Shown here piece by piece: positions 21,345 through 60,229 of a stretch of 64,000 bases of DNA (position 1 is its first letter; every line of letters begins with the position of its first letter). The notes beneath the pieces were generated by a model, which was given only the letters and a program-made list of their open reading frames with translations, made no database searches and was not told the origin of the DNA. This DNA is from Rhodosorus marinus CCMP1338 (lineage: Eukaryota > Plantae > Rhodophyta): positions 372,001 through 436,000 of the forward strand of contig JAMWBK010000012.1 of NCBI GenBank assembly GCA_029953675.1. Direction: 5' to 3'. The position numbers and the translations under genes are program-made.

Positions 21345-21767
21345 AGCATAGCCTACAGCGCTACGCAAACCGTGAAAAGGAACTAAGAACTAGGTAGGGA
21401 AGCGTGCAAACCCAGGCGCCGATGGCGCGCCTCGGCAAGCATGCTGCTCGAGTATCACCACAGAGAGACACTTGTTTATCTTGAATGAATTGGTTTAATC
21501 TCAGGATAAAAGAAAAAAACCCCGAGGGCAAAAAAACAAGACTGAGAGCGGCGAAAATCGCGCGCCTCCAACATCAACGCAGCGTTCATACGTCACAACA
21601 CCAACTTAAACGTGTAAACAACGAGGACAGACGGTCAGGGCGTGTCTCTCTGTGGCGATATTCGAGCAGCATGCTTGCCGTGGCGCGGCATCGGCGCCTG
21701 GGTTTTCACTCTTCCCTACCTAGTTCTTAGTTCCTTTTCACGGTTTGCGTAGCGTTTTAGGCTATGC
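21345..21767. repeat. Inverted repeat made of two A1 3' ends (about 128-bp arms) around a decayed C fragment
   Basis: 21345-21473 is the reverse complement of 21642-21767; both arms are truncated at GTGTCTCTCTGTGG. Confidence 0.85.
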
Positions 21768-32300: not shown

Positions 32301-33330
32301 GGTACGTGGCCGCGGTCGATGTGACCACAAAGAGGACATCGCGACCCTCATAATTTGCGAAGATGAAGTCTTCGCGGCTACAGCCCAAAGACTCCGCAAA
32401 AGTATCCCGAAAATCTCGCATGGACGGGACCTGACCCCGTGTAGTCTGGGGCCGGACGTTGAGCACCCAGAGGAATTGCAAAGCAGTCTCCGCAGGTCCG
32501 CCCTGCTGCTCGCGATAGGGTAAAAATCTTAACATAGCCGCCGTCCGTGCGGCTGTGGTACCCTTCCGCAAAACTGAGACGTAAGACGGGGCCCTCTTGG
32601 GACCACCGCGTGCTCCCGCCTTGGCTTGGAGCTGTCGCCCACCTGAGGGCTGGCCCAGGACGGGAAAGTCCGCTCCCGCTGAGGGAACATTTGAAGGATT
32701 AGGCAGCTCTGCACCCCTCTCCGAAGAGGCACCAGCTGCGGAACCACCTTCGTCACCTCCAGATCCCTGAGCTCCCCTCAACCTGTCCCGGGACAGGTTG
32801 TTGATTGACCTGGAGAAATTGACTGTCTTCCTCCAACTTCGCCACCCGGCTGGAATTCAAATTCTTACCCGAATTTGAATTTTCCCTCGCCAGGAAACCC
32901 GATTCCAGCCTACGTAGCTTCCAGCCCCCCTAGCTTCTGGGTGAGCTGAGGAACGACACCTCGATCGCCCGCGGCCGTAATCAGGCTTGGTACAGCAGAG
33001 AGCATAGCACGCACTTGCGTAGAAGAGGCGCCCTGTAACTCCACCTGCGTCGAGGAAGGGCCCGTACGAAGAGACAGTCTGTGTTCACCCTCAGTAGACA
33101 CCCCCGCCCGCGGGATCTCCGGATCCTCAGAAGTGGAGCGCGGAGGAACCCCGGCCATCACGGAAGAGTGTGTTGAACAGGAGTTTCACGAAGGAACCCG
33201 ACCAAAATATCCCGCACGATCCAGCGCCGCAGACCGAAAACTCTGGATCGAACACACCCAAAAGGGGAGAACCCGCGATAACCACCCACGAAACCCCCCG
33301 AGAGATGAAAAAACGACCCTCCTGACTTAA
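29400..33330. mobile_element. Composite of family A fragments in both orientations (ORF2 N-terminus/RT on plus; post-RT, ORF1 and 5' part on minus)
   Basis: GDLSRAARVL and RRGRSPGPSGL (29635-29946); ORF1 fragment 31900-32781; C insertion 29928-29999 with TSD GAATC. Confidence 0.88.
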
Positions 33331-36300
33331 CTGGCTTTATTAGCATAGCCTACGGCGCTACGCAAACCGTGAAAAGGAACTAAGAACTAGGTAGGGAAGC
33401 GTGCAAACCCGGGCGCCGATGCCCCGCCTCGGCAAGCATTCTGCTCGAATATCGCCACAGAGACACTTAAGCGCCGCAAACGTTCCAAGTATTCAACAGA
33501 ATGCTCAGTGAAACACTTCCGCAATCTCTCCAAACCCGACTTCTCCACGTAACCAAAGCTTTCCACAATGAAAGGCTGGAACCGGTGGGAGCGACCCTCA
33601 GCGCGAGGCAGACTGGCCATACTCTCAGCATAGCGTCGTTCCTTCACGCGGCGAAGGGCCGAACCAGCTGCTTCCCGACGACGGGCGGCAGCCGTGAGAT
33701 GGGCGTTTGCCGCAGGGCATGCAATCGCGAGGTCAACATATGCTGATCGTCTAGCGGCAGCATCGGACTTTAGGCATAGCCTAAAGCGCTACGCAAACCG
33801 TGAAAAGGAACTAAGAACTAGGTAGGGAAGCGTGCAAACCCAGGTGCCGATGGCGCGCCTCGACAAGCATGCTGCTCGAATATCGCCACAGAGAGACACT
33901 TAAACGTCGCAAAAGTTCCAAGTATTCAACAGGATGCCCAGTGAAACATTTCCGCAACCACTCCAAACCCGACTTCTCCACGTGACCAAAGCTTTCCACA
34001 TTGAAAGGCTGGAACCGGTGGGAGCGACCCTCAGCGCGAGGCAGACTGGCCATACTCTCAGCATAGAGTCGTTCCTTCACGCGGCAAAGGGCCGAAGCAG
34101 CTGCTTCCCGGCGACGGGCGGCAGCCGTGAGATGGGCGCTTGCCACAGGGCATGTAATCGCGAGGTCAACATATGCTGAGCGTCTGGCGGCTGCATCGGA
34201 GAGCGGGGCGGTGCCCTATCCGAGACCGATCTGGGTAGTTCCGATTCCACCTCAACCGTATGCCCTACACGAGTCAAACATTCGCTGAGAATGTACTTGA
34301 AGCGAGTGTGACGCCTCGTACGAAGACCTCTCATCAGTCCGCATGAACCTAAGAAATGGTTAACCACAAGCATCGATCCGACTCTCACATCCCTGACAGA
34401 AAGACGGCCGATTAGAGTGCCACGGAGCTTGTGGCAAACCCGTAAATCCGTGTGGCAGAGCGAAACTGGAAGGCATCCAGACGGTGACCCAGTGATGACG
34501 GCAGGGTCGTTAACCACAAATGTGATAGATGGCCTCCCATGCCGCGGAGGGGAGCGGCGGTGGTAGGCGGTGTGAGGAGAGAGTTGAGCAAGATTGGGGT
34601 TCATCCAAGAGCGTGCCCAAGTGGTTCAGCGTCATCTCGTCGGCCCTGGCGGCGATCCACGAACCCCAGTCGGGTGGTAGGCTACGCAACCAGTAGTTGA
34701 GTCGGGGACCGGCACAAAAGCGGGAAAGCAAGCACGCCGATTGCAGCATGCTGTCTGAAAGGCGCTCAATGGCGTCAGTGAGCTGCTTGTGCGTAGTCAA
34801 AACTCGTTCGCAAGAGGCTTGGACGAAGTTGTTGCTCCCGAAATCGACGCCGTGGTGCTCCAACCCTTCCCGTTCGCCAATGGTTCGTAGATTAGATGGC
34901 AGAGAGGTCATCGAATCTTCACTTGGAGCGAGAAAACGACACTTTTCGGGTTTCACCGTCAGACCTACTCCACGTGCAATCGCTTCGATCTGGGTCAACC
35001 CCCCAGCCAGGGTTTCAGCGGCGCCCAGGAAGGTCACGTCGTCGTGATAGGCGTAGATACGAAGAGCCGGCACCTCAGTCGCGAGACGCAAGGGAGCGAG
35101 CTGAAAGGCACAGGCATGAAGTAGAGGCCCACAAAGATCGCCTTGTTGGACTCCAGTATGTGCTTGGAGAACAGTGCCCTCCCTGGTGCAGTAGGGGAGG
35201 CTCCCCCTTCCGTAAAGACCAGAGAGGAAGAGCCACGCCTCCGGAAAAACCCGTCGGATCACCTCCAACGCACGCGTCCGTGAGACGCTGTTGAATGCGT
35301 TTCGAAAATCAACCACCAAAACTCCCCAGTCCGGCCTACACGCTCCAGCTCGATCCCATGGGTGATCAATTCGCAACCCCCCGAAAATCCCATCCCCACT
35401 TGCAAGGGCGCAATAAAAGCTGCGACCCGCTGGCGAAGGCGCTGGCGTAGTCACCTTCCAGCTAGCTTTCCGTAGGCTCTCGACCATACCGATCGGCCGG
35501 AGACGCGGGTGGGCCGGTTGATGGTCAGGCTTCGTGAGCAAGCAAAGTTGTGCCATTCGGAGATGTTCCCATGGGGCAGACGCACCCGATGTGCCCTGGA
35601 ACAGTTTGTTCAGGAGCTTGAGCAGCGCGCTCCGGCCAGGCTTGCCCAAGGCCTGCAATAATTCGGTTCGAAGCCCTGAGGGTCCGGGAAAGCGTCCACG
35701 ACGCGAGGTGCGAAGCAAATCCTCCAGATCAGACTCGTTGAGACTCAGGTAGATTTGAAACCGGGCAAACTCCGGACGGTCCAAGAATGCTTCGAATTCG
35801 GGTAGCAAGTCCACGTCGGACGAGGGGAACAAAGATGACACCGTCTGGGCGAGACTTTCTTCGTAAGGGAGGACAGGCGCCTGGCCCTCCAGAACTCGCG
35901 CCGCTCGACTCAAGTCGCCCACCGCTACCAATTTCTGTACTCGAGCCGTCAGGGGTGAGGTCAGGGGCGAGACGGTTCCAGCCCGGGTCCGCTTTCAGGA
36001 ACATGGCAAGCCGATCTCGGACACGCCATCTGCGCTCCGGCGCGTGAGTTGGGGCCAGAATCAGGCGCGGCATGACCCCCAGAAATTCCTACATGGCGGT
36101 GTCCCGATGGCTACTCGCCAGGCTCTCGAAGGTGAAGTCCAGGATGGTCCCAGCCACTAAGAGCTCGCCGCGAGGTAGGACGACAGGCGGAATTCTGCCA
36201 CGGAGGGGAAGCAAACCTCCTTCCAGAGAGATCCAACGCCGAGCCAACTTCGTAAACGCGTGCGCCAAATGCCCCAGTCTCCGCCCTCCTTCATGACATA

Positions 36301-38325
36301 AGACTGCAAATCCATCGACTGCGACCTCGCAGCCGTACCCGGGGAGCTAATCGTGCTTCTCCCCCTTAGACCCAGGGGAGTCGGTCCTCGCACGTTTTCC
36401 GCCTAACCTCCCCAGAGTGGTCAGCCGGCCACTCCGCGAGGCTCGCGGGATAGCTCCCTCGGGCTTCAACAAAGTAATAGGGGCGTTCTCCCCCGAAATG
36501 CCCTCATTCTGCTCCCCTTCCTCACCACTCTCACTGGAAGTGGTGTTGGTAGCATAGCCCTCTAATACCCCCAACCTCTGTAACTCCGCCGTGTGACTCG
36601 AGCTCAGCACAAGGCGCCTCTCCCGGTCGAAAAGGGTAGAGATGGCTGCACGCAGGTGGCGTGGCCCCGGCGCGAAACGCTTCAAAAGTATATGCTCAAT
36701 GCGGTGAAGGCGTAGCCAATGGATGGCTGCGGCTTTCACGCTGGTTTCGTGCTCAGCGGTGAACATGTTACACTGCTCAGCCGTTATCTAGTGGATCTAT
36801 CGCGCGAATGAATCTGTTCTAACAAGGATAACCGTAGTTAAAGTATGTACGGGCCCGTACAACCCCCTCTTTGGCGTCATCTAGTGGATCTATCGCGCGA
36901 ATGAATCTGTTCTAACAAGTATAACCGTAGTTGAAGTATGTACGGGCCCGTACACCCCCCTCTTTGGCAGTTCCTGTCTCCCGGAGAAACGGCAGGACTC
37001 TCTGAGCACGAAACCAGCGTGAACGCCGCAGCCATCCATTGGCTACGCCTTCACGCTGGTTTCGTGAACGCCGCAGCCATCCATTGGCTACGCCTTCACG
37101 CTGGTTTCGTGCTCAGAGAGTCCTGCCGTTTCTCCGGGAGACAGGAAAGTGCCCGAGAAACGGTCAAAGTCAAAGTGCAGAACGACCTGGGGATGAGACC
37201 GCAACCAGCGGGCACTCTCAGGCCATTGCTCGGTAGGCTTGGCCAGTAGGGCCTGCAGGTACGTGGCCGTTGTTGCAGTGACCACGAAGAGAACATCCCG
37301 ACCCTCGTAGTTCGCAAAAAGGAAGTCATCTCGGCAACAGCCCAAGGACTCCGCAAAGTATTGCGGAAATCAATCATGGATGGGACCTTACCCCGTGTAG
37401 TCTGGGGCCGAAAATTGCTTACCCAAAGGAATTGCAAAGTAGTCGCATCAGGTCTGCCCTGCTGCTCGCGAGAGGGCAAAAAGTTTAGCATAGCCGCTGT
37501 ACGGGCGGCTGTGGTACCCTTCCGTAAAACCGAGGCGTACGACGGGCCCCCCTTAGGGCCACCACGCTCCCCCGCCTTGGCTGGAGCTGTCCCCCCACCT
37601 GAGGGCTGGCCCAGCACAGGAAAGTCCGCTCCCGTTGAGGGGACGTGTAAAGGAGTAGATATGGCTGCACCCCTCCCCGAAGAGGCGCCAGTCGAGGGAC
37701 CACGAACAGCGGGCTCAGCAGCCCGCGCCTGTTCGGCGACAGTCGCAGAGTGACTGACCCCTTGATTTTGACTGCCTGGGGGCCGCGTAGCCACCGTGGC
37801 CACCGCGTCAGATTTTAGAGCAGGCGCCAGGAGGCTGGATTCCAGCAAACCAAGGCGTTGGGTCAGCTGCGGCAGGACGCCCTTGTCCCCCGCGGCGGTG
37901 ATTAGGCTGGTGACGGCTGACATGAGGGCTCGCACCTCCATACCAGTGGCACCCTGCAGCTCCACCTGCGTAGAGAAGGGGCACGAACTTAGACACACCG
38001 GGTGCCCAACCCCCAAGGACACCTCGTTGCCAGGGAGCTCCGCTCCCGAGGGAGCAGGGCGCGGGGAAACCCCTACAATCACGAGAGAATTTAGTGACGA
38101 TAGTTTAACCACCAATTCACCCGCCGAAAACACACACCACCCAACTCCACAAGAGAAAAATCCCCGTCACGACTCAACAACCAGGAGGTGAATGACCCGA
38201 CTACCAACCACAAAACCCGAAAAAACCGAGGGAAGGGCAGCAGAGAGAAGCGCCTCCCACCAAAGAACCCACTTGCCACGCAAAACCACCGAAAACTAGC
38301 ACCGGACACCCTCACGAATACTGGT
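33330..38325 (-). mobile_element. Rearranged near full-length family A1 element (5' UTR, ORF1, ORF2 RT, deletion, RLE), plus an extra 3' copy at 33330-33765
   Basis: 5' block at 38240-38318; ORF1 37096-38133 and 36347-36766; RT ORF 34510-35931 with GVQQGDLCGP and YAYHDDV; RLE 33811-34146. Confidence 0.88.
36786..36968. repeat. 93-bp tandem dimer containing palindrome TGTACGGGCCCGTACA
   Basis: Copies start at 36786 and 36879; palindromes at 36846-36861 and 36939-36954. Confidence 0.92.
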
Positions 38326-39110: not shown

Positions 39111-40579
39111 TGCTAGTGTTTTATGGATAAATACCCTCAATTCCGTTACGGAATAGCCGTATTCACGAAGTTGGTAGAAAACCAAATATATATGCAGGGA
39201 TCCCGCTCGTTTACTACGGTATTTACTCTCAAGATCAAAGCCGTGCATTGAAATGCCGATCGGTATTTGTTTTGCTTCTGGAGAATCCTACAAATATATA
39301 TATGAAAAATAAGCATTTGACGTTTTGATCCAATGTTTATCCTATATTCAATTGAGACCCAACTTTCATCCCCTGTCCCAAAGAAAAAGTCCCGTCTACA
39401 ACCACTCATTTAATTTACTATTTTCAATTGTTTGATAATTGGCTGTCGGCGGCTTGCCTTTTGTTTAATGAAAATGTTTCAAGACTTTTCAAATGGGACA
39501 GATTGGGACGCTTATTTGTTTTTTTCTATTTCCTGCTCATGACCGGTTTCCGGGACAATTTGGCGTTCGCCATTTGTCTTTTGGGAGTTTTTGGGGCTAT
39601 AAAATCTGGGACACTGAAATTTCCACACCCGAGAATATCATTTAAAGTTGTTTTTTTAGTGCCATGGTGTGGGACATCGTAAGCTGGCTGCTGAGTGTCA
39701 CTCCGCGAGCCCAGGGGGACGCCAGTTGGGAGGGTGGGAACATCAAGAGGCGGTGCTAATCATTACAACGTGGGGCTACCAGCTCAAAGCAGTGTGCTTA
39801 TACTTTTGACGTGGAACTGAGTCTGCGAAGAACTGTTAGGCTCGGTCCGAACTCCACTGGAAAAAAGTATCAATCGTGGGGAATGAGCATCGATTCTTCC
39901 TTGGCTATACCACGTTGTCACTACTCCAAGATTGCGGTAGCCCTCTTATAGACTGCAAGTGCGTACAAAACGGAAACTCCAGATGCATACAAATTCTACC
40001 CATCTCTCCAAAAAATCGCCACTAGCAGAGCGCTTTAGCACTTTAGCCACTTGGAGACGCAGTCAACATCCATAGCTTGGGCCCTCCACCGCCATACGCA
40101 CACCACTTTCTATCAGAACAAGAAGAACCTGTTTACCGATGCTCTTACACCTATAGCGCCTGCTCCACATCAACCGATAGAAGCCCAAGTGTGTAGTCGA
40201 TCAGTTCACTGCCAAGCGCATCTCAACACGCTGTCAAGCCCTCCATGAAACAAAAGTTAGCCGTCAGTGACCCAAACCGGCCACCGCCCTCGCCGGGAGT
40301 GATGGATTATGTGGTTTTTTCTGGGTATACTGTCTTGGGTGCTTTTCCATCTGCACTGGTCGGCAATGAGACCTCTGACGCAATGGACAGCTAGGATGGG
40401 ATAGCCATAAATTTCGGAACTCAAACAGATTTTGGTTGAGTTGTGAGGCTTTGGAATACGTACATAAACTATGCGTTGGCTCCTGAAGTCGGAGTCGGGG
40501 TTTAGAGAAAGGAGAGTAGACTACTGTGAGAGAGATTCAAAACTGTAGAGAAACGGAGAGAGAAAGAGGAGTATTCAGT

Positions 40580-41020
40580 ATGTGCGGAAAGGGCTCAGTG
40601 ATTGTTCTGGCGGTGTTTGTTGTTTGTGCTTTCAGCGCACCTGTCGACCGTAATGCTGCAATGAGCTCGGGGTTGAAAGATCCGTCGTCGGTGAGAGACC
40701 CAATCGCTTGTTACAACCGATGCTGCCAGAAGTGTGATCCAAGGGACGAAGCCTGCCGGGAGAAGTGTGGTATCCGGTGTGGATTGACCGACGACAAGCC
40801 TGAACACGATCCAATCGAGTGTTACAATGAGTGCTGCCAGAACTGCGATCCGAGCGATGACGCCTGCCGGGAGAAGTGTGGTATTCGATGTGGGTTGATA
40901 GATGACGAACCTGAGGAGGATCCAATTAAGTGCTACAATGAGTGCTGTCAGGAGTGCGACAGTAGCGAAGAGGATTCTTCTTGCCGGTTAGCCTGCGGTG
41001 TCGACTGTGGTCTCGTTTGA
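40580..41020 (+). CDS. Small secreted acidic Cys-rich protein with three 37-aa repeats
   Basis: Signal MCGKGSVIVLAVFVVCAFSA; three DPIxCYNxCCQxCD(x5-7)CxxxCGxxCGL repeats. Confidence 0.82.
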   Translation: MCGKGSVIVLAVFVVCAFSAPVDRNAAMSSGLKDPSSVRDPIACYNRCCQKCDPRDEACREKCGIRCGLTDDKPEHDPIECYNECCQNCDPSDDACREKCGIRCGLIDDEPEEDPIKCYNECCQECDSSEEDSSCRLACGVDCGLV

Positions 41021-41709: not shown

Positions 41710-42060
41710 AAGGCCCTAGTAGAGAGCCGTACGACGTTCGCTGACCTTGTTGTTCGTAGTCCTCAGACTCGTTATTTGCCGGCTGCGGGAGAGCGCCGTG
41801 GTCCTGTTACCTCTGGTCATTGAGAGCCTTGGGTTTCTGGATTCCGTTGGTTCCCGTGGCTTCGGGAAGCGATCCACGAACGCCCCGACCGCCTGTCCCC
41901 TTTGCTTACCCGTTTAAGTTTGTTGCTGTGGTGTAGTGTATGAGCGCTGTTTTGATGTTGGAGGAGCGCAATCCTCGCCGCGCTTAGTCCTTTGTTTCCC
42001 GTCGGGGTTCTTTCTTCATGTTTAATCGGGCACTGAAGGTCTCCGATTAAACAAAATTCA
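41710..42060 (+). mobile_element. Decayed C-like 3' end
   Basis: GACCTTGTTGTTCGTA..GGAGAGCGCCGTGG..CGCCGCGCTTAGTC..CCGATTAAAC..ATTCATTC. Confidence 0.7.
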
Positions 42061-42761
42061 TTCAGTAGAGACTACGCCGGAGATATTAGTGCAAGGAACG
42101 GGAGGGTACCCGGTGGTTGGATGTTTCGAAAACAGATAACTCAAAAACAAGGAAAATATGTACGCATCAAGTGGCGGGTTGGCTCAAGGCAAAAATTCCG
42201 ATCTCCAAATAAAATAAAACTATATTGATTGTCTCTCAACTGATACTGGTATATTGACTGATATTGCGGTGGACAGTGAAATCCTACCACAAACACTTTT
42301 CCGGGAAATCGGCGCTAGAGACAACAAGGCCGCGGAGAAAGAAGTGTTTCAAATATTGGTCTCCAAGCAAAAATCGGATCTGCATCACATATTGATTACT
42401 TATCAGTCGAACGGCTATATATTGACTGATGTGTGGTCAGAAGAGCCTACAAATTGGGTCCGACAGGGGCACCTTCAATTCCAGCTCCGAATCGATGCAT
42501 TGGTGAACCGCTCCTATGATAGCAAAAGCGCGGGTTCTCTTTCGACTGGAAAATACGCTCGATTCTGTTTCATAGAACCAGTATATATATCCAAACAACT
42601 ATACTGTTCGTTGAAAACCAACTAGACGGTATGATATAGAAAAAGCCGGTACAATATTCCATTTTAGATTGTTTTGTTACCGTATTTTATTCTCAAAATC
42701 GGTTAACTCGATCGATATTCGTTTGTTCCCAGCGCTATAAATAGTCTTCACCTTCAATGCA

Positions 42762-44183
42762 TTAAAAACACCAATTGATTTCTGTAGCCGAAAAAATTAT
42801 TTCCTTATTCAAATGCATGAGCATTTCTATATTTAGTTTTCTCCCCATGACTGCTTTCCAAACTTTATCAAAATGAGGATGTGAGTTAGCGATTCGTACT
42901 CGTAATTCTAGGGAATCATGGCCCGTACAGCTGTTTATGAGTGCAATTCGAAGGATATCTGGGTAATCTGGACTTTTCTGGTTGAGTATACAGTATATCT
43001 GGTCTTTATATCTGTCTTTCACAGGGTTTTCAGCAGCGGAGTCTTGACTGAGGGTGTCCAGAGCCAGCGGATTCGGAGAGGCCGATGGTGCTTCTGCCAT
43101 GTCGGTGTCACGAGCCTCGGAGACAGGGCGAGGGGAGGAAGGGTGCTCAAGAGTCGGCGGCAGAAGGTCAAACGCAGGGTGGGCTTCCAGCAGGGTGGCC
43201 TCAGTGGAGAGGAAGGCCTCTAGCGCGGTGCGGAGGACCCCGCGAGGAGGAAAACGCGCGAAGAGGCTCGCCTGTATGCGCGAGAGCCGCGCCGCATGAG
43301 TGTGTAGGGCGACAACCGAAGCCTGCGAGGCATCCAGGTTTTGCAAGGCCGACGGTGGAACCCAGCCGGCGTCAAAACGATCGAACTCGACAAACAAAGA
43401 GACATGAGGACGAGTCAGTATCATGTTGGCCAGAGCAGAGCGCTGGGGCGCGGGGGTGGTTACAAGCGATTGAAGGAACTGGTAAGCCGAGTCAGCAACA
43501 ATAAAACAGGCATGAGGGCCCGTGAAGTCCACATATAGGAATTCAGACGGGGCGACCCCAAGGGAGGAAGCCATGGTGTCGCGAAAATCGCGGTAGTGGA
43601 CGGGCGCGCGGCCCCGACCACGAGAGGGGGTCTGGGGACGCACGTTCGTCATCCAAACAAAGTGGAACGGAGATAGTTGGCGAGAAGAGTCAATAGGGAT
43701 GTGTTGTGGCATCATACGCACCATTGCCGTCGTGCGTTGTTCAGAAGAGCCCCTGCGTAGGACCTGCGAATAGGTCGCACGTGGGGCACTGGAGGGAGCA
43801 GGATTCGGGCCCGACGCGGGCCCAGGAGGCGTCTGTCCTTGAATAGGGGTAGGCCAGTCGGAATCAGGAATGGCCGGAGCGGAGCGCTCGGGTCGGGTGG
43901 AGGCAGGCCCCGCTGTACCGTGCGGATCCGCGGGGACGGGCACCGGGGGGTATGGGGCAGGCGCGGAGGCGGAGAAGCGCTCCAAATAGGCGATCAGCAG
44001 GGGCAGGCGGTGTTCCTGGGAAGCAGTCACAAGAAGACTCGTCAGTTTCGAGCAGATCCCATGGGCTAACTCGTCAGCGCAGTCCGTGAGGGTGGCCGCG
44101 GTACTAAACCCGCCCACGCAGAGCTCCACGCGCGCTGAGAGAACGGCTCCGTCCGCCGGAATGGGTGGGGAAACCCCAACCAT
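42762..44183 (-). CDS. CRE family C ORF1 (388 aa, no stops) fused in frame to 85 unrelated codons
   Basis: The ORF track shows 42762-44297 open; the likely start is MVGVSP at 44183; near-identical to 55162-56328 up to AAENPV, then unrelated AT-rich sequence. Confidence 0.6.
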   Translation of the reverse strand: MVGVSPPIPADGAVLSARVELCVGGFSTAATLTDCADELAHGICSKLTSLLVTASQEHRLPLLIAYLERFSASAPAPYPPVPVPADPHGTAGPASTRPERSAPAIPDSDWPTPIQGQTPPGPASGPNPAPSSAPRATYSQVLRRGSSEQRTTAMVRMMPQHIPIDSSRQLSPFHFVWMTNVRPQTPSRGRGRAPVHYRDFRDTMASSLGVAPSEFLYVDFTGPHACFIVADSAYQFLQSLVTTPAPQRSALANMILTRPHVSLFVEFDRFDAGWVPPSALQNLDASQASVVALHTHAARLSRIQASLFARFPPRGVLRTALEAFLSTEATLLEAHPAFDLLPPTLEHPSSPRPVSEARDTDMAEAPSASPNPLALDTLSQDSAAENPVKDRYKDQIYCILNQKSPDYPDILRIALINSCTGHDSLELRVRIANSHPHFDKVWKAVMGRKLNIEMLMHLNKEIIFSATEINWCF

Positions 44184-44428
44184 AACGATTGGAAGGTGTG
44201 AAAAACCGATTCCCCCACGAAACCCCCAAAAAGAGAACTTGTTCCCAACGTTTGCAACCAAAGAAAAACCACCACGACCTCCAAGGGGCGCTAGCAACCC
44301 CCAGCACGCACCACACCACTAGAAGATGCGGGGGAAAGGCTGCAGAAAGAAGCGCCTCCCACCGAAGAACACAATTGCGACTCAAAACCACCAAAAGCCA
44401 GCACCATACACCCTCACGAAACCAAAAA
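43022..44428 (-). mobile_element. 5'-intact, 3'-deleted family C element directly downstream of U2
   Basis: Colinear with 54917-56328. Confidence 0.92.
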
Positions 44429-44442
44429 CGGGGAGTAAAAGA

Positions 44443-44635
44443 GGTGCTCCGCAACAGAAAGCAGTGCGAAATCTGAGCAAAGCGCGGTAAACGGGCGTGG
44501 CAAGCCACTAACCAAACATAAACCCCTCCAGAAAAATATTTGTAACAAAAGCATCTAAAATTTAGATGCATCAAGTTGTTACACTTGATAGAACAGATAC
44601 TACACTTGATCTTAGCCAAAAGGCCGAGAAGAGTT
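44443..44635 (-). ncRNA. U2: U2 spliceosomal snRNA
   Basis: Minus strand reads AACTCTTCTCGGCCTTTTGGCTAAGATCAAGTGTAGTATCTGTTCT; stem IIa ATCAAGT/ACTTGAT; IIb GCATCTAA/TTAGATGC; IIc TTGTTACA complementary to the IIa loop; Sm-like ATATTTTTCTGG; 3' stem TGCTC..GAGCA; about 193 nt. Confidence 0.95.
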
Positions 44636-44711
44636 AGGTCACGCTCACAACTTTGGTAGTAAAGCCGAGCATGTTTGTGAGGTTAGCTGTGGAGATAGAC
44701 CGCCGATGGAG

Positions 44712-44793: not shown

Positions 44794-47700
44794 ATGAAGA
44801 TTTACAAGAGTGTTTTGTGGGCGGCAGTGGCATCCATGTGCGTATGCCTGTGCGCAAGAGCGCACAAAGATGGTGCGGTGAATGAAGCATGTTTTGGGTG
44901 GGGGTTATCTGATGAAATATGTGCTATGGCCATTGATGAGAGGCAAGAACTGGTTAAAGCGGAATCACAGAACACGCTGACGATCTACGCGCCGTACTTT
45001 TACATGCTCGACTTTTCTCAGAATGAGACGGACACTACGGCGTTATTCGGAGGCAGCACATTAGTTGAGATCTACGGGTTCTATATTATGATCAAGGGAA
45101 AGGCGGGAACCAGCGCAAACATTAGGGGCACGTTACTGTACCTCCTTGCATCGATCATCGATATCCAGACCGATGGATCCTTCTCCTTGGACATGAGTGG
45201 CCCGCCGGTTGATGTCCCTCCTCCGGCGGTGCCATCTGCGAAGCCGACGCCGGGCCCCCAGCCGCGTTTCTCCGGGCGTCAAGGAGCCTCTGGTATTGGT
45301 GGCGCTCCAGGAGGTACCGGAACGGATGGAAACTCTGGTGGTAATTTGATTATGATCACCAAACACCTCAACCTCACCTCGCTTCACTCTGGAGGGTACG
45401 ATTTCACGATCATAAACGATGGGAGCGCCGGGTCGGTCGGTGGCAAAGGTGGACCTGGACAGATCGGCGGTGTGGGAGCTGCAGGAGTGAGCTGCGCATT
45501 CCATAGAAAGAGCTTCGGAACATCTAAAGATCCAAACTGCTGCAAATACTGTAAAGGGCCGTTTGGGCACTACGAACGCTGTAATCTGTACCAGGCTGGC
45601 GAGCCTGGACCAGGAGGCCCGGGAGGTCCTGGAGGACCCGGTGGCAAGGGCGCAGCCCCTGGATGGGTCTCTGTGTATTCCAATTCAGCGAACGGAGCGG
45701 ATAACAAGCCGATAGATAATGACACAGTCAAGGGTCTGATTCTATCCACCAGCAAGTTTGGAGCGGTGGGAGTAGGAGGTCCAGGCGGTGACGGTGGAGC
45801 CGGTGCAGTTAACGACCCCAATGCGCTGTGTACGACGTACTCAAAGGCCGAACCGTTCACGATGTTCTACAAAGGCATGTACGCCGTGAAACCGGTTGGG
45901 ACTCCTGGCCTCCAGGGCCCCACCGGAGTGAACGGGACGACGTTTGGGTACCAGAGGGCGACGTTCATCCGCGCGACGGTCAATGCTACAGGAAACCCGG
46001 GGGATGCGAACCATTACGAGAAACCACACGATTGGGCATACCAAGACTTCCCCGCACCAGTGGAGTACCTCGGTTTCGGACTGGAGCTCTCTGCGAACAT
46101 GCTAAGCTCGCTGGCGTTCATTGACTACGACGCTGGCGCTCAGAACACCTACAACTTGATTCTCCAATCGGTGAGCGACATGATGTACAGCGCCCAGGTG
46201 ATGATGAACCTTACCGCCGACCACACGACCCAGAAGCTCTACGCCTCCTACGTGAACAAGGCGTGGACTCTGATCAGGAGCATCAACCAGGTGAGCTCAC
46301 CAAGCGGATCGCCCCTTGGACAAGTATCGGTGGCGAGCTTCGACCAGCAGCTCGATGACCTCGCAGAGTTTCGAGATCTTGCCGAGGTGGTCGAAGGATA
46401 CTACGAGGAGTACGCCAAGCAGGTGAACGACAGGGAGACATCGGAGAAGATATTGCTCAATGCCACCAAGAGCTCGTTGGTCGGAGTTGAGCAGCAGAGG
46501 ACACTACAGGGACAGATCTACAAGAGCCTTGCGAAAATGAATCAGACCTTGGATGATGTCGCCCTGAAGATCCAAATGACGAAGTACGCGCTGAACGAGG
46601 ACCAGGAGGAGCTGAACCACTGTTGGGAGGAAGCTCAGAAGATTGTGATGTTCAAGAACGTGATGAACTTTGTCTCCTTTGTCACGGGCGTTGCCGATCT
46701 TGGGTTTGCAGCGACCAAACTGGTCGGTAAGGCGTCCCAGTTTATCAGCGACGGCGGAAAGTTCTTCGACGGTATCAACCTGGCGGTCGACAACAAGTTC
46801 TCTAACATTCCAGCATTCATCAACAGCATCGGAAAACTCGTTCCAGGACCGGGACAGTCCTCAGACTGGGATCCGTACGCGTCGAGTATGAAACTGATCT
46901 CTAACGACGAGACGACCGTGGACGGCTATCAAGGAGGGCTCCAGAGCGCTCTTCAAGGGATCTACCATGCGGATAGCTATGCAGATGCACTGGTTATCTA
47001 CCAGAAGATGAACCAGACAGCCGACGACTACAAGACAGCGAGAATCAATATGGCCAAGAGCGAGGTGACTAGCAAAGTCAATGCGATGAAGGCAGCGTGC
47101 CCGGGACAGGCCCAAAATTTCTTTCGCAGCTTTGATACGCTTCAGATGTGGGTCAACCAGCGCAATGATCTGCTCGCGGTCTATAGCGCCCTCGTTGTGT
47201 ATTATAACCGGGTTACTGCGAAGAAACTCTACTTGGAGAACATCGCCCAGAACACTCTCACGGAGCTTCAACAGAATGCCACCAACCCCGCGTCGCTCGC
47301 CGTACTCAACGTACATCAGGAGACTTACAACATGTTGGTCGAGCAGTTCTCGAAGAACCTGGGTCTCGTTCTCAATGCCAGGAGCTACCTCATGATGGGA
47401 GCGACAAATAGCAGCCTTTCTGCCGTCTCGTTTGCCAGCTGTAGATGGGAGACGTCAATCATGAAGGCCTCGGACAACATGTTCTTCAAGTGTGCAGCAG
47501 ATGCCGTTCTGGAGCTGAAGAACGCGCTTGCCTACTGGCACACAAACACCTACTCCAACAATCAGCTCGTTGACTGGAGGTCGTACTGGGGTCCAATTGA
47601 CTTGAACGAGGAGTCTGTAGGTGCTGATCGATGGGCCGATTTCAAGAAGACCGGCATTCTCAGCTTCTGCATGGATCCTACCGAGCCGAGTTTCAACAAG

Positions 47701-48600
47701 GGCCCGGGTCTTAGTGCCGGGATGTTCTTCCCGCTGGTCAGCATGGACAGTATCTTTGTCGTAATGGACGGTGCACCTGCGGAAGGAGGCGTACGGGTTG
47801 ATATTCAACACCAGGCCTCCGCCGGAGTCGTTCGTGCGATGGAGAATCCGACGAGCACTGACGCTGAGCATCCTTACCTGACGAAGAAATTTACGCACGC
47901 GGACCGAGACCTTCGATTCATCTACACGGGAGAGCCTCCTGCAGATGACCAGGTCAGCGTCCTTGCCTGGATGAAATCGACGAACATTTCAGTAAGGGCG
48001 GACATGGGCGATCCTAGTAAGATCCTGAGGATAAGCCCCTTCAGCAACTACCAGATTCAAACCGACGCTGGCATTCTACAGACCGTGGACAACGTACGGG
48101 TGTACTACACGGGGCACTATGTGCCAGCAAAAGATTTTAATATCCTGCCGATTTCCTCGTTATCGGAACCGATCATGTGCGCTTCTACTGTCGGGAAGGC
48201 AATGGCCACTCCGACACCAACGACTTCTCCGTCAGACGCCGACAGATCGGCAGGAGCAGCAACGAACAAATGTAAGTCGTACTCTGTTTCGGTAGAGCTC
48301 GTGACGGGGTACGTTTCGCAGGACGGATCATACACCAAGGCGTGCAGGATCAGTTTTGAGCACCCAGTAGAAGGACGACGACCCGAGCAGATCCGGCTCG
48401 AATGGGAGTGGGAGAAGTACCGAGACGACACAGACTGGGAGTACAACAACGCAGTTTCAATGGCAATCAATGCCGCAAAAGCTATAGTCACATTTAATGG
48501 AACCCCAGAGGAAGGTGATGGGACCACTCAGGTGGTGCTGCTCACGGATACCTGTCCTACCAACGTTCGAGTTTTGAGCACGTACCCTCTGTGCTTGTAG
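44794..48600 (+). CDS. Large secreted Gly-rich/collagen-like + helical protein, possible toxin-like (TcA-type C-terminal domain)
   Basis: 1268-aa intronless ORF with signal peptide; GxxGxxG blocks; long amphipathic helices with hydrophobic hairpin VMNFVSFVTGVADLGFAATKLVG; FKKTG..F....F..V.V...G..V...H..F.H...F.Y..SPFS.Y.I pattern. The CDS is confident; the function is inference. Confidence 0.85.
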   Translation: MKIYKSVLWAAVASMCVCLCARAHKDGAVNEACFGWGLSDEICAMAIDERQELVKAESQNTLTIYAPYFYMLDFSQNETDTTALFGGSTLVEIYGFYIMIKGKAGTSANIRGTLLYLLASIIDIQTDGSFSLDMSGPPVDVPPPAVPSAKPTPGPQPRFSGRQGASGIGGAPGGTGTDGNSGGNLIMITKHLNLTSLHSGGYDFTIINDGSAGSVGGKGGPGQIGGVGAAGVSCAFHRKSFGTSKDPNCCKYCKGPFGHYERCNLYQAGEPGPGGPGGPGGPGGKGAAPGWVSVYSNSANGADNKPIDNDTVKGLILSTSKFGAVGVGGPGGDGGAGAVNDPNALCTTYSKAEPFTMFYKGMYAVKPVGTPGLQGPTGVNGTTFGYQRATFIRATVNATGNPGDANHYEKPHDWAYQDFPAPVEYLGFGLELSANMLSSLAFIDYDAGAQNTYNLILQSVSDMMYSAQVMMNLTADHTTQKLYASYVNKAWTLIRSINQVSSPSGSPLGQVSVASFDQQLDDLAEFRDLAEVVEGYYEEYAKQVNDRETSEKILLNATKSSLVGVEQQRTLQGQIYKSLAKMNQTLDDVALKIQMTKYALNEDQEELNHCWEEAQKIVMFKNVMNFVSFVTGVADLGFAATKLVGKASQFISDGGKFFDGINLAVDNKFSNIPAFINSIGKLVPGPGQSSDWDPYASSMKLISNDETTVDGYQGGLQSALQGIYHADSYADALVIYQKMNQTADDYKTARINMAKSEVTSKVNAMKAACPGQAQNFFRSFDTLQMWVNQRNDLLAVYSALVVYYNRVTAKKLYLENIAQNTLTELQQNATNPASLAVLNVHQETYNMLVEQFSKNLGLVLNARSYLMMGATNSSLSAVSFASCRWETSIMKASDNMFFKCAADAVLELKNALAYWHTNTYSNNQLVDWRSYWGPIDLNEESVGADRWADFKKTGILSFCMDPTEPSFNKGPGLSAGMFFPLVSMDSIFVVMDGAPAEGGVRVDIQHQASAGVVRAMENPTSTDAEHPYLTKKFTHADRDLRFIYTGEPPADDQVSVLAWMKSTNISVRADMGDPSKILRISPFSNYQIQTDAGILQTVDNVRVYYTGHYVPAKDFNILPISSLSEPIMCASTVGKAMATPTPTTSPSDADRSAGAATNKCKSYSVSVELVTGYVSQDGSYTKACRISFEHPVEGRRPEQIRLEWEWEKYRDDTDWEYNNAVSMAINAAKAIVTFNGTPEEGDGTTQVVLLTDTCPTNVRVLSTYPLCL

Positions 48601-52220: not shown

Positions 52221-52309
52221 GCCAATGAACGAATGGTTTAATCGGAGGCTGAAAGAAAAAACAAAGCCAGTAAATCCAACGGGAACTCTTGAAGATAGCC
52301 TCTTGAAGA

Positions 52310-54815
52310 TAGCATGAGCCCCTCGATCTTGAAGCTGCTCCCGACAGGGACTTTATCCGTGCACAGATCGCTCTACCGTTGCGATTAGGGGGATTCGGCG
52401 TCGCAGACCGTGGGCTGGTATGCTCGCCAGCGGCGGTTGCCTCCTGGGCTACCGCGCTGCGAACGTTGGTGACCTTCCAGATGCGAAGTGCCTGCCTCTT
52501 GGCTCGAGCTTTGACCAACGAGGATCCAGTGACCCTGCCGCCCCCGCTTTTGACAATTTATGATGGTCTTCAACACGCGTTCAGGAGGTGCAACGCCGTG
52601 CCGGACGCAAATCGGTCCCGCTTTCGTTCCTGGAGGGAGCTGTTATGGGGACGAGCTGAAGCGATTGAGGATTCTCCCCTCGACCGAGTTCTTGCCGATA
52701 TCGGAGAGGCTAGCCCCGGGTCCCCTGTTGCAGACTACCCGGGTTTGAGCCGATTGTGGAGCTCCCGCACTGATGTGATTCAACATAGCCTCACCTGGGG
52801 CCACCACAGTGCCGCTCACACAGTCATGCTCAATTCTCCTCTTACGCCGCCTACCACTGCCGCTCGTCTCCGCGGCATGGGAGGCCACCTCTCGCACTTG
52901 TGGTTAACCACTCTACCGTCGTCATTGAGTCATCGTCTCGATGCTTTCCAGTTCCGTTCTGCCGCACGGATCTATCTCGGTTTGCCACAGGCTCCGTGGC
53001 ACTCTAATCGGCCGTCTTTCTCTCAGGGATGTGAGAGCCGGATTGACGCTTGTGGCTACCACTTCCTGGGTTCCTGCGGACTGTTGCGAGGTCTCCGTAC
53101 GAGGCGTCACACTCGCCTCAAGTACATCCTCAGCGAATTTTTGACTCGGATAGGGCATACGGTTGAGGTTGAGTCGGAACTGCCCAGATCAATCTCGGAC
53201 TCTGCACTGCCCCGTTGTATAGCCGATCTCCTCGTCTCTGACGCTGCTGCCAGACGCTCAACATATGTGGACCTTGCGATTACCTGCCCCGTGGCCAGCG
53301 CCCACCTCACCGCAGCCGCCCGCCGCCGGGGGGCCGCGGCTTCAGCCCTTCGAAGAGTTAAGGAACGACGGTATGCTGAGAGCATGGCCAGTCTGCCTTG
53401 CGCTGAGGGTCGCTCTCACCGGTTCCAGCCATTCATTGTGGAAAGCTTTGGTCACGTCGATAAGTCGGGTTTAGAGTGGTTGCGGAAATGTTTTGCTGAG
53501 CATCCTACTGAATATTTGGCGCTCTTGAGGCGTTTAAGTGTCTCCCTTTGGCGATATTCCAGCGACATGCTTTCCGAGGCGCGCCATCGGCGCCTGGGGT
53601 TGCATACTTCCCTCCCTAGTTATTGGTTCATCTTCACGCCTTGCGTAGCGCTTCAGGCTATGCTAGTAAAGTCCCCGCTTTTGACAATTTATGATGGTCT
53701 TCAACACGCGTTCAGGAGGTGCAACGCCGTGCCGGACGCAAATCGGTCCCGCTTTCGTTCCTGGAGGGAGCTGTTATGGGGACGAGCTGAAGCGATTGAG
53801 GATTCTCCCCTCGACCAAGTTCTTGCCGATGACGGAGAGGCTAGCCCCGGGTCCCCTGTTGCAGACTACCCGGGTTTGAGCCGATTGTGGAGCTCCCGCA
53901 CTGATGTGATTCAACATAGCCTCACCTGGGGCCAACACAGTGCCGCTCACACAGTCATGCTCAATTCTCCTCTCACGCCGCCTACCACTGCCGCTCGTCT
54001 CCGCGGCATGGGAGGCCACCTCTCGCACTTGTGGTTAACCACTCTACCGTCGTCATTGAGTCATCGTCTCGATGCTTTCCAGTTCCGTTCTGCCGCACGG
54101 ATCTATCTCGGTTTGCCACAGGCTCCGTGGCACTCTAATCGGCCGTCTTTCTCTCAGGGATGTGAGAGCCGGATTGACGCTTGTGGCTACCACTTCCTGG
54201 GTTCCTGCGGACTGTTGCGAGGTCTCCGTACGAGGCGTCACACTCGCCTCAAGTACATCCTCAGCGAACTTTTGACTCGGATAGGGCATACGGTTGAGGT
54301 TGAGTCGGAACTGCCCAGATCAATCTCGGACTCTGCACTGCCCCGTTGTATAGCCGATCTCCTCGTCTCTGACGCTGCTGCCAGACGCTCAACATATGTG
54401 GACCTTGCGATTACCTGCCCCGTGGCCAGCGCCCACCTCACCGCAGCCGCCCGCCGCCGGGGGGCCGCGGCTTCAGCCCTTCGAAGAGTTAAGGAACGAC
54501 GGTATGCTGAGAGCATGGCCAGTCTGCCTTGCGCTGAGGGTCGCTCTCACCGGTTCCAGCCATTCATTGTGGAAAGCTTTGGTCACGTCGATAAGTCGGG
54601 TTTAGAGTGGTTGCGGAAATGTTTTGCTGAGCATCCTACTGAATATTTGGCGCTCTTGAGGCGTTTAAGTGTCTCCCTTTGGCGATATTCCAGCGACATG
54701 CTTTCCGAGGCGCGCCATCGGCGCCTGGGGTTGCATACTTCCCTCCCTAGTTATTAGTTCATCTTCACGCCTTGCGTAGCGCTTCAGGCTATGCTAGTAA
54801 AGTCCAGTAAAGTCC
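52310..54815 (+). mobile_element. Family A2 3' part with a 1131-bp tandem duplication forming a 792-codon read-through ORF (52379-54757)
   Basis: The unit repeats from 53673; copy-1 stop is TGG (53624-26) and copy-2 stop is TAG (54755-57). Confidence 0.92.
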
Positions 54816-55161
54816 AGTAAATCCAACTCTTGTCAGAAAAGCATGATACTAATTTAACCAGTCAGGACGACATCAGTAAATTTGTTAGTGTAGCCCTGAG
54901 CGTCACCCGTTCGCAGTTTTGGTTTCGTGAGGGTGTATGGTGCTGGCTTTTGGTGGTTTTGAGTCGCAATTGTGTTCTTCGGTGGGAGGCGCTTCTTTCT
55001 GCAGCCTTTTCCCCCGCATCTTCTAGCGGTGTGGTGCGTGCTGGGGGTTGCTAGAGCCCCTTGGAGGTCGTGGTGGTTTTTCTTTGGTTGCAAACGTTGG
55101 GAACAAGTTCTCTTTTGGGGGGTTTCGTGGGGGAATCGGTTTTTCACACCTTCCTATCGTT

Positions 55162-56460
55162 ATGGTTGGGGTTTCCCCACCTATTCCGGTGGACGGAGCC
55201 GTTCTCTCAGCGCCCGTGGAGCTCAGCGTGGGCGGGTTTAGTACCGCGGCCACCCTCACGGACTGCGCTGACGAGTTGGCCCATGGGATCTGCTCGAAAC
55301 TGACGAGTCTTCTTGTGACTGCTCCCCAGGAACACCGCCTGCCCCTGCTGATCGCCTATTTGGAGCGCTTCTCCGCCTCCGCGCCTGCCCCATAACCCCC
55401 GGTGCCCGTCCCCGCGGATCCGCACGGTACAACGGGGCCTGCCTTCAACCGACCCGAGCGCTCCGCTCCGGTCATTCCTGATTCCGACTGGCCTACCCCT
55501 ATTGAAGGACAGACGCCTCCTGGGCCCGCGTCGGGCCCGAATCCTGCTCCCTCCAGTGCCCCACGTGCTTCCTATTCGCAGGTCCTTCGCAGGGGCTCTT
55601 CTGAACAACGCCCGACGGCAATGGTGCGTATGATGCCACAACACATCCCTATTGACTTTTCTCGCCAACTATCTCCGTTCCACTTTGTTTGGATGACGAA
55701 CGTGCGTCCCCAGACCCCCTCTCGTGGTCGGGGCGGCGCTCCCGTCCACTACCGCGATTTTCGCGACACCATGGCTTCCTCCCTTGGGGTCGTCCGGTCT
55801 GAATTCCTATATCTGGACTTCACGGGCCCTCATGCCTGTTTTCTTGTTACTGACTCGGCTTACCAGTTCCTTCAATCGCTTGTAACCACCCCCGCGCCCC
55901 AGCGCTCTGCTCTGGCCAACATGATACTGACTCGTCCTCATGTCTCTTTGTTTGTCGAGTTCGATCGTTTTGACGCCGGCTGGGTTCCTCCGTCGGCCTT
56001 GGAAAACCTGGATGCCTCGCAGGCTTCGGTTGTCGCCCTACACACTCATGCGGCGCGACTCTCGCTCATACAGGCGAGCCTCTTCGCGCGTTTTCCTCCT
56101 CGCGGGATCCTCCGCACCTCGCTAGAGGCCTTTCTCTGCACCGAGGCCACCCTGCTGGAAACCCACCCTGCGTTTGACCTTCTGCCGCCGACTCTTGAGC
56201 ACCCTTCCTCCCCTCGCCCTGCCTCCGAGGCTCGTGACACCGACATGGCAGAAGCACCATCGGCCTCTCCGAATCCGCTGGCTCTGGACACCCTCAGTCA
56301 AGACTCCGCTGCTGAAAACCCTGTGTCTACTTTCTTCAGGTCTTTTAGTTCATTTGTGCGCCCCCCACGTAAGCGTCGTGCGGCTCCTGAGCCTCCCTCC
56401 GACGCACCTCCTCCGGATATTCGATCTGCCTTCCCGACTGAGGGGAGGCCCGATGTCTGA
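55162..56460 (+). pseudogene. ORF1 of the family C element (about 432 aa; premature TAA at 55393)
   Basis: ORFs 55048-55395 and 55402-56460 are in the same frame; the 44183 copy has TAC at that codon. Confidence 0.85.
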
Positions 56461-59400: not shown

Positions 59401-59595
59401 GCACTAGCACATCGCTTGGTACCCCTGATCATTGAGTGCTTTGGGTTCATGGACTCTGTTGGTTCTCGCTGGCTTCGGGAGTTGTTCCGCGAACGCCCTG
59501 ACCGTCTTCAATCGTTGTTTACCCGCTTAAGTTTCCTGCTGTGGCGCATGAATGCCGCTTTGATGCTGGAGGCGCGAGTACTTCGCCGCGCTTAG
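56453..59595 (+). pseudogene. ORF2 (RT-CCHC-RLE) of the family C element, with 3 frameshifts and one stop
   Basis: ATG 56453 overlaps the ORF1 stop (ATGTCTGA); IRPIGLVEVVRKLA, QLGVG, DFTNAFNRV, GVQHGDPLSP, YHDE (57818-29), LPLRLGGLG, CPLC..H..C, ADL/YVD/KEIKY. Confidence 0.88.
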
Positions 59596-60229
59596 TCTTT
59601 TTTTCCCCTCGGGGTTTTTTTTTCAGCCTCCGATTAAACCATTCGTTCGAGTCCCGAAGCACGAGTTCTTCGCCGCACTTAGTCTTTTTTTCCCCTCGGG
59701 GTTACTTCTTTCAGCCTCCGATTAAACCATTCGTTCGAGTAAATTTATATCACCTCAAAAGATGAATTCCCGTCAAGAAAAAAGTTTCATAGAAAAAAAA
59801 CAAAGCTTGGTTACCGAATCTGATAAACGATGTATATCCCGGTATGGAACGAATATCGCGTTGAAAAAAAACAACAACGAAACTAGTCCGTCCATATCTC
59901 AGTCAATTTATATCACCTCAGTTTACAAACCCTGTCATGAATCATTGTTTTCATAAAGCAAATGGTAGTATTGAATCTAATAAACGATATAGATAGCTAT
60001 TAACTCCGTGCATTTGTCTTGCCTTTTCGGTTTTTGGGTGGAAGAAGATGAAATCCGGTTGGAGTGATGTCGATGGCTGGTAGCCCGGTTGTGGTAGCCT
60101 CACCATTCATTCAGTACGAACGAACGGTTTAATCGGAGGCTGAAAAAAAAAAAAAAAAAGCCTCAGTAGGGCTAAAGTCATTCAGCCAACCCCGATTTCC
60201 TTTGAATGAATGAATGATTTCCTTTAGAG

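Follow-up and report, generated by a model that had tools for sequence, protein, structure and literature searches.

A U2 Small Nuclear RNA Sequence Abutting the 5' End of an R2-like Retrotransposon in Rhodosorus marinus: A Tentative Case of Template Jumping

The U2/Element Locus

In a 64-kb stretch of the genome of Rhodosorus marinus CCMP1338 (contig JAMWBK010000012.1, positions 372,001 to 436,000; the whole stretch is called the window hereafter), a complete U2 small nuclear RNA (snRNA) sequence stands directly upstream of the 5' end of a retrotransposon that lacks long terminal repeats (non-LTR), here designated family C. The initial annotation had reported a structurally complete U2 followed, about 15 nt later and in the same orientation, by the 5' untranslated region (UTR) and a stop-free first open reading frame (ORF1) of the element. 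This description holds with two refinements, namely that both parts lie on the minus strand and that only a 5' fragment of the element, cut at 43022, is present. The explanation tentatively favored below is that U2 and the element were fused during reverse transcription, when the enzyme would have jumped from one RNA template to another. All counts of copies, snRNAs, and flanks refer to the window. From U2 onward, the features at the junction are as follows.

44635 to 44439 (5' end 44635, 3' end 44439), minus strand: complete U2 snRNA sequence (Rfam RF00004)
44438 to 44428, minus strand: 11-nt linker TTACTCCCCGT between the U2 end given by Rfam and the element head, delimited by reading the sequence
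44184-44427, minus strand: 5' UTR of family C, opening at the family 5' terminus (G)TTTTGGTTTCGTGAGGG
43023-44183, minus strand: family C ORF1, codons 1-387, stop-free and truncated on its 3' side, with its ATG at 44183
42762-43022, minus strand: breakpoint at 43022 (homology to the reference copy stops at 43020-43022), then unique AT-rich DNA carrying an 86-codon extension of the frame

The U2 sequence was matched by RF00004 over the full model (positions 1-192 of 192, untruncated) with 147.1 bits (gathering score 46) and an E value of 3e-30 in a cmscan search of the whole window. Its 5' half is canonical (GGCCUUUUGGCUAAGAUCAAGUGUAGUAUCUGUUCU), all of stems I-IV are present, and every functional motif is canonical, including the GUAGUA branch-point-binding motif and the Sm-like site, both of which lie in intact regions; a few non-canonical pairs (U-U mismatches) occur in stems III and IV. 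Besides this sequence, Rfam yielded no match of any kind in the window, either at gathering thresholds or at E<=1, and so no further snRNA or U2 fragment; no transfer RNA was found there by ARAGORN. On the other side of U2, a host gene encoding 1268 amino acids (44794-48600, plus strand) begins with a start codon only 158 bp away, and its protein is 75% identical to a Rhodosorus marinus transcriptome protein. Self-comparison of the window showed that U2 sits in unique DNA beside this gene. Approximately 49% of the window is self-repeated, the bulk of it belonging to the group of family C-type elements, with dozens of element ends.

The linker occurs once in the window. Its length is approximately 15 nt if it is counted from the ...GCACC end of stem IV, the unassigned sequence between U2 and the element amounting to 9-15 nt, and it could be the 3' flank of a U2 gene, a 3' extension of pre-U2 RNA, or added nucleotides. 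Within it, GAGTAAAAG (44430-44445, plus strand, opposite to U2) resembles the AGTAAAGCC tail repeat of neighboring element families, as does TAGTAAAGCC (44656-44668, plus strand), which lies 20 nt upstream of the U2 start, also on the strand opposite to U2. Both may be chance matches or tiny remnants of tails.

Over 1409 nt (44427 down to 43020), the element head aligns at 97% identity with 54917-56325 (plus strand), the beginning of a full-length copy that serves as the reference for family C. The 5' UTRs show five differences in 244 nt, and the ORF1 protein next to U2 is 92-93% identical to that of the reference copy (55159-56457). The family 5' terminus reads GTTTTGGTTTCGTGAGGGTG, and the opening 30-mer (TTTTGGTTTCGTGAGGGTGTATGGTGCTGG) has just two exact occurrences in the window, one at 44427 (minus strand) and the other at 54917 (plus strand). 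The two copies differ at 40 of 1409 sites, the changes in ORF1 being 9 synonymous and 26 non-synonymous, which is neutral decay of about 1.4% per copy. A U2 pseudogene as old as these copies would hold only about three changes, and thus the good condition of U2 says little about its status.

The copy beside U2 consists solely of this 1.4-kb head (the 5' UTR and ORF1 codons 1-387), its homology to the reference breaking off approximately 45 codons short of the stop codon of ORF1. Beyond the breakpoint, the DNA at 42019-43021 is unique in the window and has a G+C content of 40%. The ORF1 frame remains open through 43023 to a stop at 42762, resulting in a 473-codon fusion from ATG to stop; the chance of an 86-codon in-frame continuation is about 0.4% by base composition. 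The extension was considered as a host exon and set aside, as it had no Pfam match and no homologue among 1.84 billion representative proteins. The same unique DNA of 40% G+C holds a second long open frame of 123 codons (42254-42625, plus strand) with no Pfam match. No fragment starting where the U2-side copy stops was found elsewhere in the window. Twin priming or inversion involving a C-like tail at 41727-42018 was rejected, as the identity of this tail is no higher than 76-79% and the two are separated by 1 kb of unique DNA. Since the 3' part of the element is gone, the target-site duplication that would delimit the insertion is lost as well, and no direct repeat of at least 6 nt was found around either U2 plus C or C alone.

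Structure and Affiliation of Family C

The reference copy and related features of the window are listed below.

54917-59649, plus strand: reference full-length family C copy, with ORF1 containing one stop, then reverse transcriptase and CCHC/endonuclease regions with frameshifts
54875-54883 and 59738-59746: 9-nt direct repeat AGTAAATTT bounding the reference copy
54884-54916, plus strand: 33 nt of non-element sequence that extend the reference copy at its 5' side and are enclosed by the 9-nt direct repeat
9988-10321: nested, 5'-truncated family C fragment of 334 nt, within the 3' region of another family, with a 10-bp duplication TTGAGGCGTT (9978-10331)
44330-44427 (minus strand), 54917-55012 (plus strand), and 38230-38318 (minus strand): conserved 5' UTR block of approximately 95 nt, 84% identical between families

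In the reference copy, a 5' UTR of 242 nt is followed by ORF1 (55159-56460, one internal stop) and, from about 56174, by ORF2. A reverse transcriptase was recognized in ORF2 through a weak Pfam RVT_1 match, and its C-terminal part contains a CPLC...H...C motif followed by the ADLV/VDLAV motifs (ADLV...VDLAV), as read from the ORF. The best PDB matches of ORF2 were R2 proteins, covering both the reverse transcriptase and the CCHC region, with LINE-1 ORF2p in second place and aligned in the reverse transcriptase only. The 3' end is a defined tail (...CAGCCTCCGATTAAACCATTCGTTCG), 5'-truncated copies are numerous in the window, and target-site duplications are approximately 10 bp long, which the 9-nt AGTAAATTT fits. 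The reverse transcriptase, CCHC and endonuclease motifs, 5'-truncated copies, and target-site duplication are those of the restriction-like-endonuclease group (R2/CRE/NeSL/R4/HERO); judged by these motifs, family C is a two-ORF non-LTR retrotransposon of this group with an R2-like character. The nearest database proteins of ORF2 (P0003-P0016, 14 proteins) share at most 36% identity with it and are unnamed, and the CRE-clade label given to the element is putative. A diverged C-like fragment at 21480-21643 (minus strand) lies in about the same place in another copy as the nested fragment listed above, inside a palindromic rearrangement.

The U2-side ORF1 is 73% identical to P0002 from a JGI contig, and the homology search with ORF1 returned a single 938-bp contig (L001) of JGI sample 3300016967, which encodes an ORF1 relative (73%); the same sample contains an ORF2 relative (34%) on L004 (4187 nt). 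Scans of metagenomes with an ORF1 alignment and with the conserved 5' UTR pattern detected no relative and no match, respectively. The number range of this JGI sample is that of marine eukaryote culture transcriptomes; if the sample is such a transcriptome, elements related to family C are transcribed. Another assembly, unrelated to these, provided a further head-to-tail cluster that is free of snRNA (L005; 23.5 kb of a 123-kb contig, ENA ERZ24900291 ctg3984l), in which three co-oriented reverse transcriptase genes with 28% identity to ORF2 stand in a row.

The 5' Terminus of the Element

Both C copies open at the same nucleotide behind unrelated upstream sequence. A second family, present in full length from 38325 to about 33780 (minus strand), shares the first 95 nt or so of the C UTR, as listed above, and is only about 35% identical to family C in ORF1. 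Its copy starts 7 nt further in, directly behind the tail of another element, and the chance that a random truncation would land so near is roughly 10 in 4700. Because the same terminus recurs after unrelated upstream DNA and the second family starts at nearly the same place, position 44427 is taken as the 5' end of the family C RNA.

The conserved block may be an internal promoter or an RNA signal; it had no Rfam match, and its fold was not significant. Together with the occurrence of the same terminus at 54917, where no U2 lies upstream, it suggests that family C has its own start site, independent of the U2 promoter. A self-cleaving ribozyme in the 5' UTR, which could trim a co-transcript, was searched for with Rfam at E<=10 and only noise was returned, and the 5' UTR folds no better than shuffled sequences (z = -0.19).

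Foreign Sequence at the Front of the Reference Copy

The reference copy is itself composite. Within its 9-nt direct repeat, the 33-nt non-element extension precedes the 5' terminus, and on the 3' side the first tail is succeeded by a second tail unit of 85 nt (59650-59746). At face value, this looks like three templates joined in one integration event, the outcome expected of a reverse transcriptase that jumps onto the 3' ends of RNAs, and the position of the extension inside the repeat implies that foreign RNA or flanking sequence can be added before C heads. The repeat itself overlaps the AGTAAA motif of neighboring tails, and hence its significance is only moderate. Discontinuous cDNAs with foreign 5' additions thus arise in family C.

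Other identities for the sequence upstream of the reference copy were tried and discarded. The 33-nt extension was compared with C tails as a diverged member, and the similarity was not significant (p about 0.4-0.5). The whole 91 nt before the reference copy was considered as a small RNA; it had no Rfam match and no structure (z = 0.21), and no second copy occurs in the window. Its appearance is that of degenerate tail repeats followed by the 33-nt extension. This stretch starts with AACTCTTG, which resembles the 5' end of U2, and the same string stands behind another tail at 52284.

Site Choice of Family C and Its Neighbors

The initial annotation had proposed that the element docks just 3' of snRNA genes, and had suggested inspecting other snRNA loci and the remaining 5'-intact junctions. 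Neither bears the proposal out in the window: no other snRNA was found (Rfam, E<=1), and the second C copy, at 54917, has no U2 upstream. The 3' ends point the same way, as nine close and three diverged C-type tails have unrelated downstream flanks with no snRNA association. No small-RNA gene was found near other C-type tails in the window, several of which are nested in other elements or stand behind other tails. The five distantly related loci from other sources (L001-L005) contain no snRNA either.

Intact element 5' ends are located at four positions in the 64 kb: 44427, 38325, 33297, and 54917. Those at 38325 and 33297 each lie directly behind a (AGTAAAGCC)n-type tail of another element, and that at 54917 lies 91 nt behind such a tail. 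Family C behaves as an R2-type element that chooses its targets loosely and favors the tails of other elements.

Head-to-tail arrays of 5'-truncated 3' fragments were also observed (52542-54812; 33310-34202, minus strand; 61041-62141; 59569-59740), with units of 1131, approximately 433-499, and 87 nt, each beginning right behind the tail of the previous unit. They suggest repeated insertion at tails or unequal exchange. Serial template jumping was considered as their origin and was judged less likely than repeated tail insertion, because the downstream units are often 5'-truncated.

Origin of the Junction

The explanation that we tentatively favor is a chimeric retrocopy of U2 and the element, formed by template jumping and later truncated at its 3' side. 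Here, U2 was probably a passenger, joined to the front of the element at the RNA or cDNA stage, rather than the target of the element. On arriving at the 5' end of a C transcript, the reverse transcriptase of family C would have switched to the 3' end of a U2 RNA and continued copying as far as the U2 cap, the product being U2-linker-C. The U2 template may have been a 3'-extended precursor, which would explain the linker of 9-15 nt. Everything 3' of codon 387 might then have been lost through a later deletion, or the cDNA might have been primed internally at a chromosome break.

Several observations are in line with such a jump. U2 is complete from its first nucleotide and co-oriented with the element, and C begins at its RNA 5' end, as end-to-end template jumping predicts. 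The resemblance of ORF2 to R2 structures is also counted in its favor. As an alternative raised by the initial annotation, a U2/element template-switch chimera in fact fits better than docking, given that the element has its own 5' terminus and that a 33-nt foreign extension lies within the duplication of the reference copy, the jump itself being what we infer. The unrelated sites of the C tails and the absence of any other snRNA or U2 fragment in the window argue against targeting. By our own estimate from the four intact 5' ends in 64 kb, the probability that one of them lies on the same strand and no more than 20 nt downstream of any given site is about 5e-4; with a handful of U2 genes per genome, far fewer than one such locus is predicted, and chance adjacency of U2 and a C head is therefore unlikely. 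A chimera also accounts for the presence of U2 in this repeat-rich window. It follows from this explanation that the U2 sequence at 44439-44635 would be a pseudogene, as we infer.

A number of points are unfavorable to the chimera. Jump junctions usually contain only a few untemplated bases, fewer than the 9-15 nt of the linker, so that either the U2 RNA was 3'-extended, or its mature 3' end is longer in this species, or a third, short template took part. The 3' truncation is not produced by target-primed reverse transcription, and a second event or internal priming is assumed; every hypothesis, however, has to invoke a later deletion or priming at an internal site. The delimiting duplication is lost, as described above, with no repeat of at least 6 nt around the unit, and only one such junction was seen. 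U2 is canonical and lies 158 bp from a real host start codon, and could equally be a resident gene. Finally, repeated tail insertion accounts for the head-to-tail arrays of related families no less well than jumping does.

A resident gene is the starting point of a second explanation, which is possible but doubtful: an ordinary full-length C insertion 11 nt downstream of a functional U2 gene, followed by deletion of the 3' 3.3 kb. The element would have landed there by chance or through a preference for open, highly transcribed DNA, and any read-through would be incidental. The structural completeness of U2, with intact branch-point-binding and Sm regions, and its position in unique DNA beside a real host gene with a 75% Rhodosorus marinus homologue are what would be expected, any linker length is acceptable, and in a window with about 49% repeats and dozens of element ends a close neighbor is less surprising; Utopia copies in Phytophthora are likewise directly preceded by intact U2 genes (PMC4640811). 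However, the estimated chance of about 5e-4 per U2 locus at the element density of the window, the lack of snRNA association in all 12 other C or C-like ends, and the second event still required for the 3' truncation reduce its appeal.

It is unlikely that the junction was carried here by 5' transduction, in which a source copy of C just downstream of a U2 gene elsewhere would have given rise to a read-through U2-linker-C RNA that was then retrotransposed. In that case, the linker would truly derive from the 3' flank of U2, transduced flank is an equally good identity for the 33-nt extension of the reference copy, and PMC4494074 names both 5' transduction and template jumping among the origins of 5' extensions. 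Nevertheless, an unseen source locus of the rare kind with an insertion beside U2 is demanded, the second C copy has no U2, and the 3' truncation is still unexplained.

The docking proposal itself, that is, insertion of family C or a sub-lineage at a fixed short distance 3' of intact snRNA genes with expression by read-through, is very unlikely. In one variant, the 3'-end signal of U2 would be displaced, and a U2-ORF1 read-through RNA would serve to express the 473-codon ORF1 fusion. In favor of docking are the precise adjacency with a common orientation, the site specificity often seen in elements with restriction-like endonucleases, and the known targeting of U2 by Utopia and Keno (PMC4640811). 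Against this, the 12 C or C-like 3' ends are located at unrelated sites, some nested in elements and one with a 10-bp duplication, and U2 fragments occur nowhere else in the window. The same 5' terminus without U2 at 54917 and the shared 95-nt UTR block suggest that the element has its own promoter, no self-cleaving ribozyme was found in the 5' UTR to trim a co-transcript, and the five relative loci from other sources are snRNA-free. Least likely of all is an assembly or rearrangement artefact at 43022 or at the U2/element join, which would suit a window of which about half is repeats and a 3'-truncated head that is unusual for such elements, but is hard to reconcile with unique sequence on both sides of the fragment and with a join lying outside any repeat common to another locus in the window.

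Overall, the junction is most probably either a one-off by-product of reverse transcription or a chance neighbor. In either case, other U2 loci should be checked before this one is annotated as a functional U2 gene.

Other Features of the Window

Two features unrelated to the junction were recorded. An ORF of 755 amino acids (26923-29190, plus strand) with a weak von Willebrand A domain match contains a regular 12-nt tandem repeat at 28000-28467, with about 39 units that are up to 98% identical. Another ORF (40526-41020, plus strand; 164 amino acids) has a signal peptide-like start and three cysteine-rich repeats (CYN.CCQ.CD...CREKCGIRCGL), with no Pfam match.

Comparison with Known Systems

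The restriction-like-endonuclease non-LTR elements CRE, SLACS, and CZAR, some of which have two ORFs, are tied to a co-oriented small-RNA transcription unit. Every copy of these elements occupies one fixed site inside the spliced-leader exon, whereas copies of family C are scattered and lie mostly in the tails of other elements; the 3' flanks of C are mutually unrelated, and the sole small-RNA gene in the window is U2. CRE is included in the clade list of PMC4640811.

Utopia is a U2-specific element with its insertion point at U2 nt 38/39, which leaves U2 from nt 39 onward as the 3' flank, and Keno inserts inside U2 at the same position (PMC4640811). Residence in U2 arrays is the reason why Utopia copies in oomycetes (Phytophthora) are immediately preceded by intact U2 genes (PMC4640811). 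A restriction-like endonuclease and an intact upstream U2 are thus shared with family C. However, Utopia has one ORF with 1-3 N-terminal zinc fingers in addition to its endonuclease (PMC4640811), whereas family C has two ORFs with no zinc-finger family match; its junction lies outside U2, and no U2 fragment stands behind any C tail in the window. If docking were true, family C would represent a novel strategy of flank docking for a restriction-like-endonuclease element, and red algae would gain their first report of a retrotransposon associated with snRNA.

Chimeras of snRNA and long interspersed elements (LINEs) that arise by template switching are known for U6 and L1 and, more rarely, for U1, U2, and U5 in mammals, and WEIRD/MGL is a further case in Magnaporthe (PMC4476161, PMC2104539, PMC4494074). 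In these chimeras, a full-length, co-oriented copy of a small RNA is fused at the 5' side to a retroelement, and a change of template by the reverse transcriptase is held responsible; the present locus shares with them the full-length, co-oriented small RNA copy on the 5' side. The known chimeras join the small RNA to the 3' part of a 5'-truncated LINE, an Alu, or an mRNA and keep the 3' end and the duplication, whereas here the 5' end of the element is intact but separated from U2 by an 11-nt linker, its 3' part has been lost, and it resembles R2 and not L1. In SINEU, a group of crocodilian short interspersed elements (SINEs), U1 or U2 has repeatedly been added at the 5' end through a template jump or 5' transduction (PMC4494074). 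Both cases have U1 or U2 sequence at the 5' end of a retroelement, but SINEU elements are short and non-autonomous and propagate with their snRNA head, whereas the present case is a single locus involving the head of an autonomous element, with no sign in the window that U2 is part of the family C consensus. If joins of U2 to the element should recur across the genome, they would indicate either flank-docking target choice or acquisition of an snRNA head as in SINEU.

A biochemical parallel is offered by the R2 reverse transcriptase, which is known to jump end to end, leaving one template at its 5' end and resuming at the 3' end of the next (Bibillo and Eickbush 2004, as cited in PMC4494074). 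The best structural matches of family C are R2 proteins. Unlike R2, family C has no 28S ribosomal DNA target, no detectable N-terminal zinc finger or Myb domain, and no ribozyme match in its 5' UTR, and it carries a separate ORF1. If the junction is indeed a chimera, it adds one more fusion of an snRNA with a retroelement, from a red alga-like genome and an R2-like element, and its position at the true 5' end matches the end-to-end jumping of R2 in vitro, providing useful natural evidence for this process rather than a new principle.

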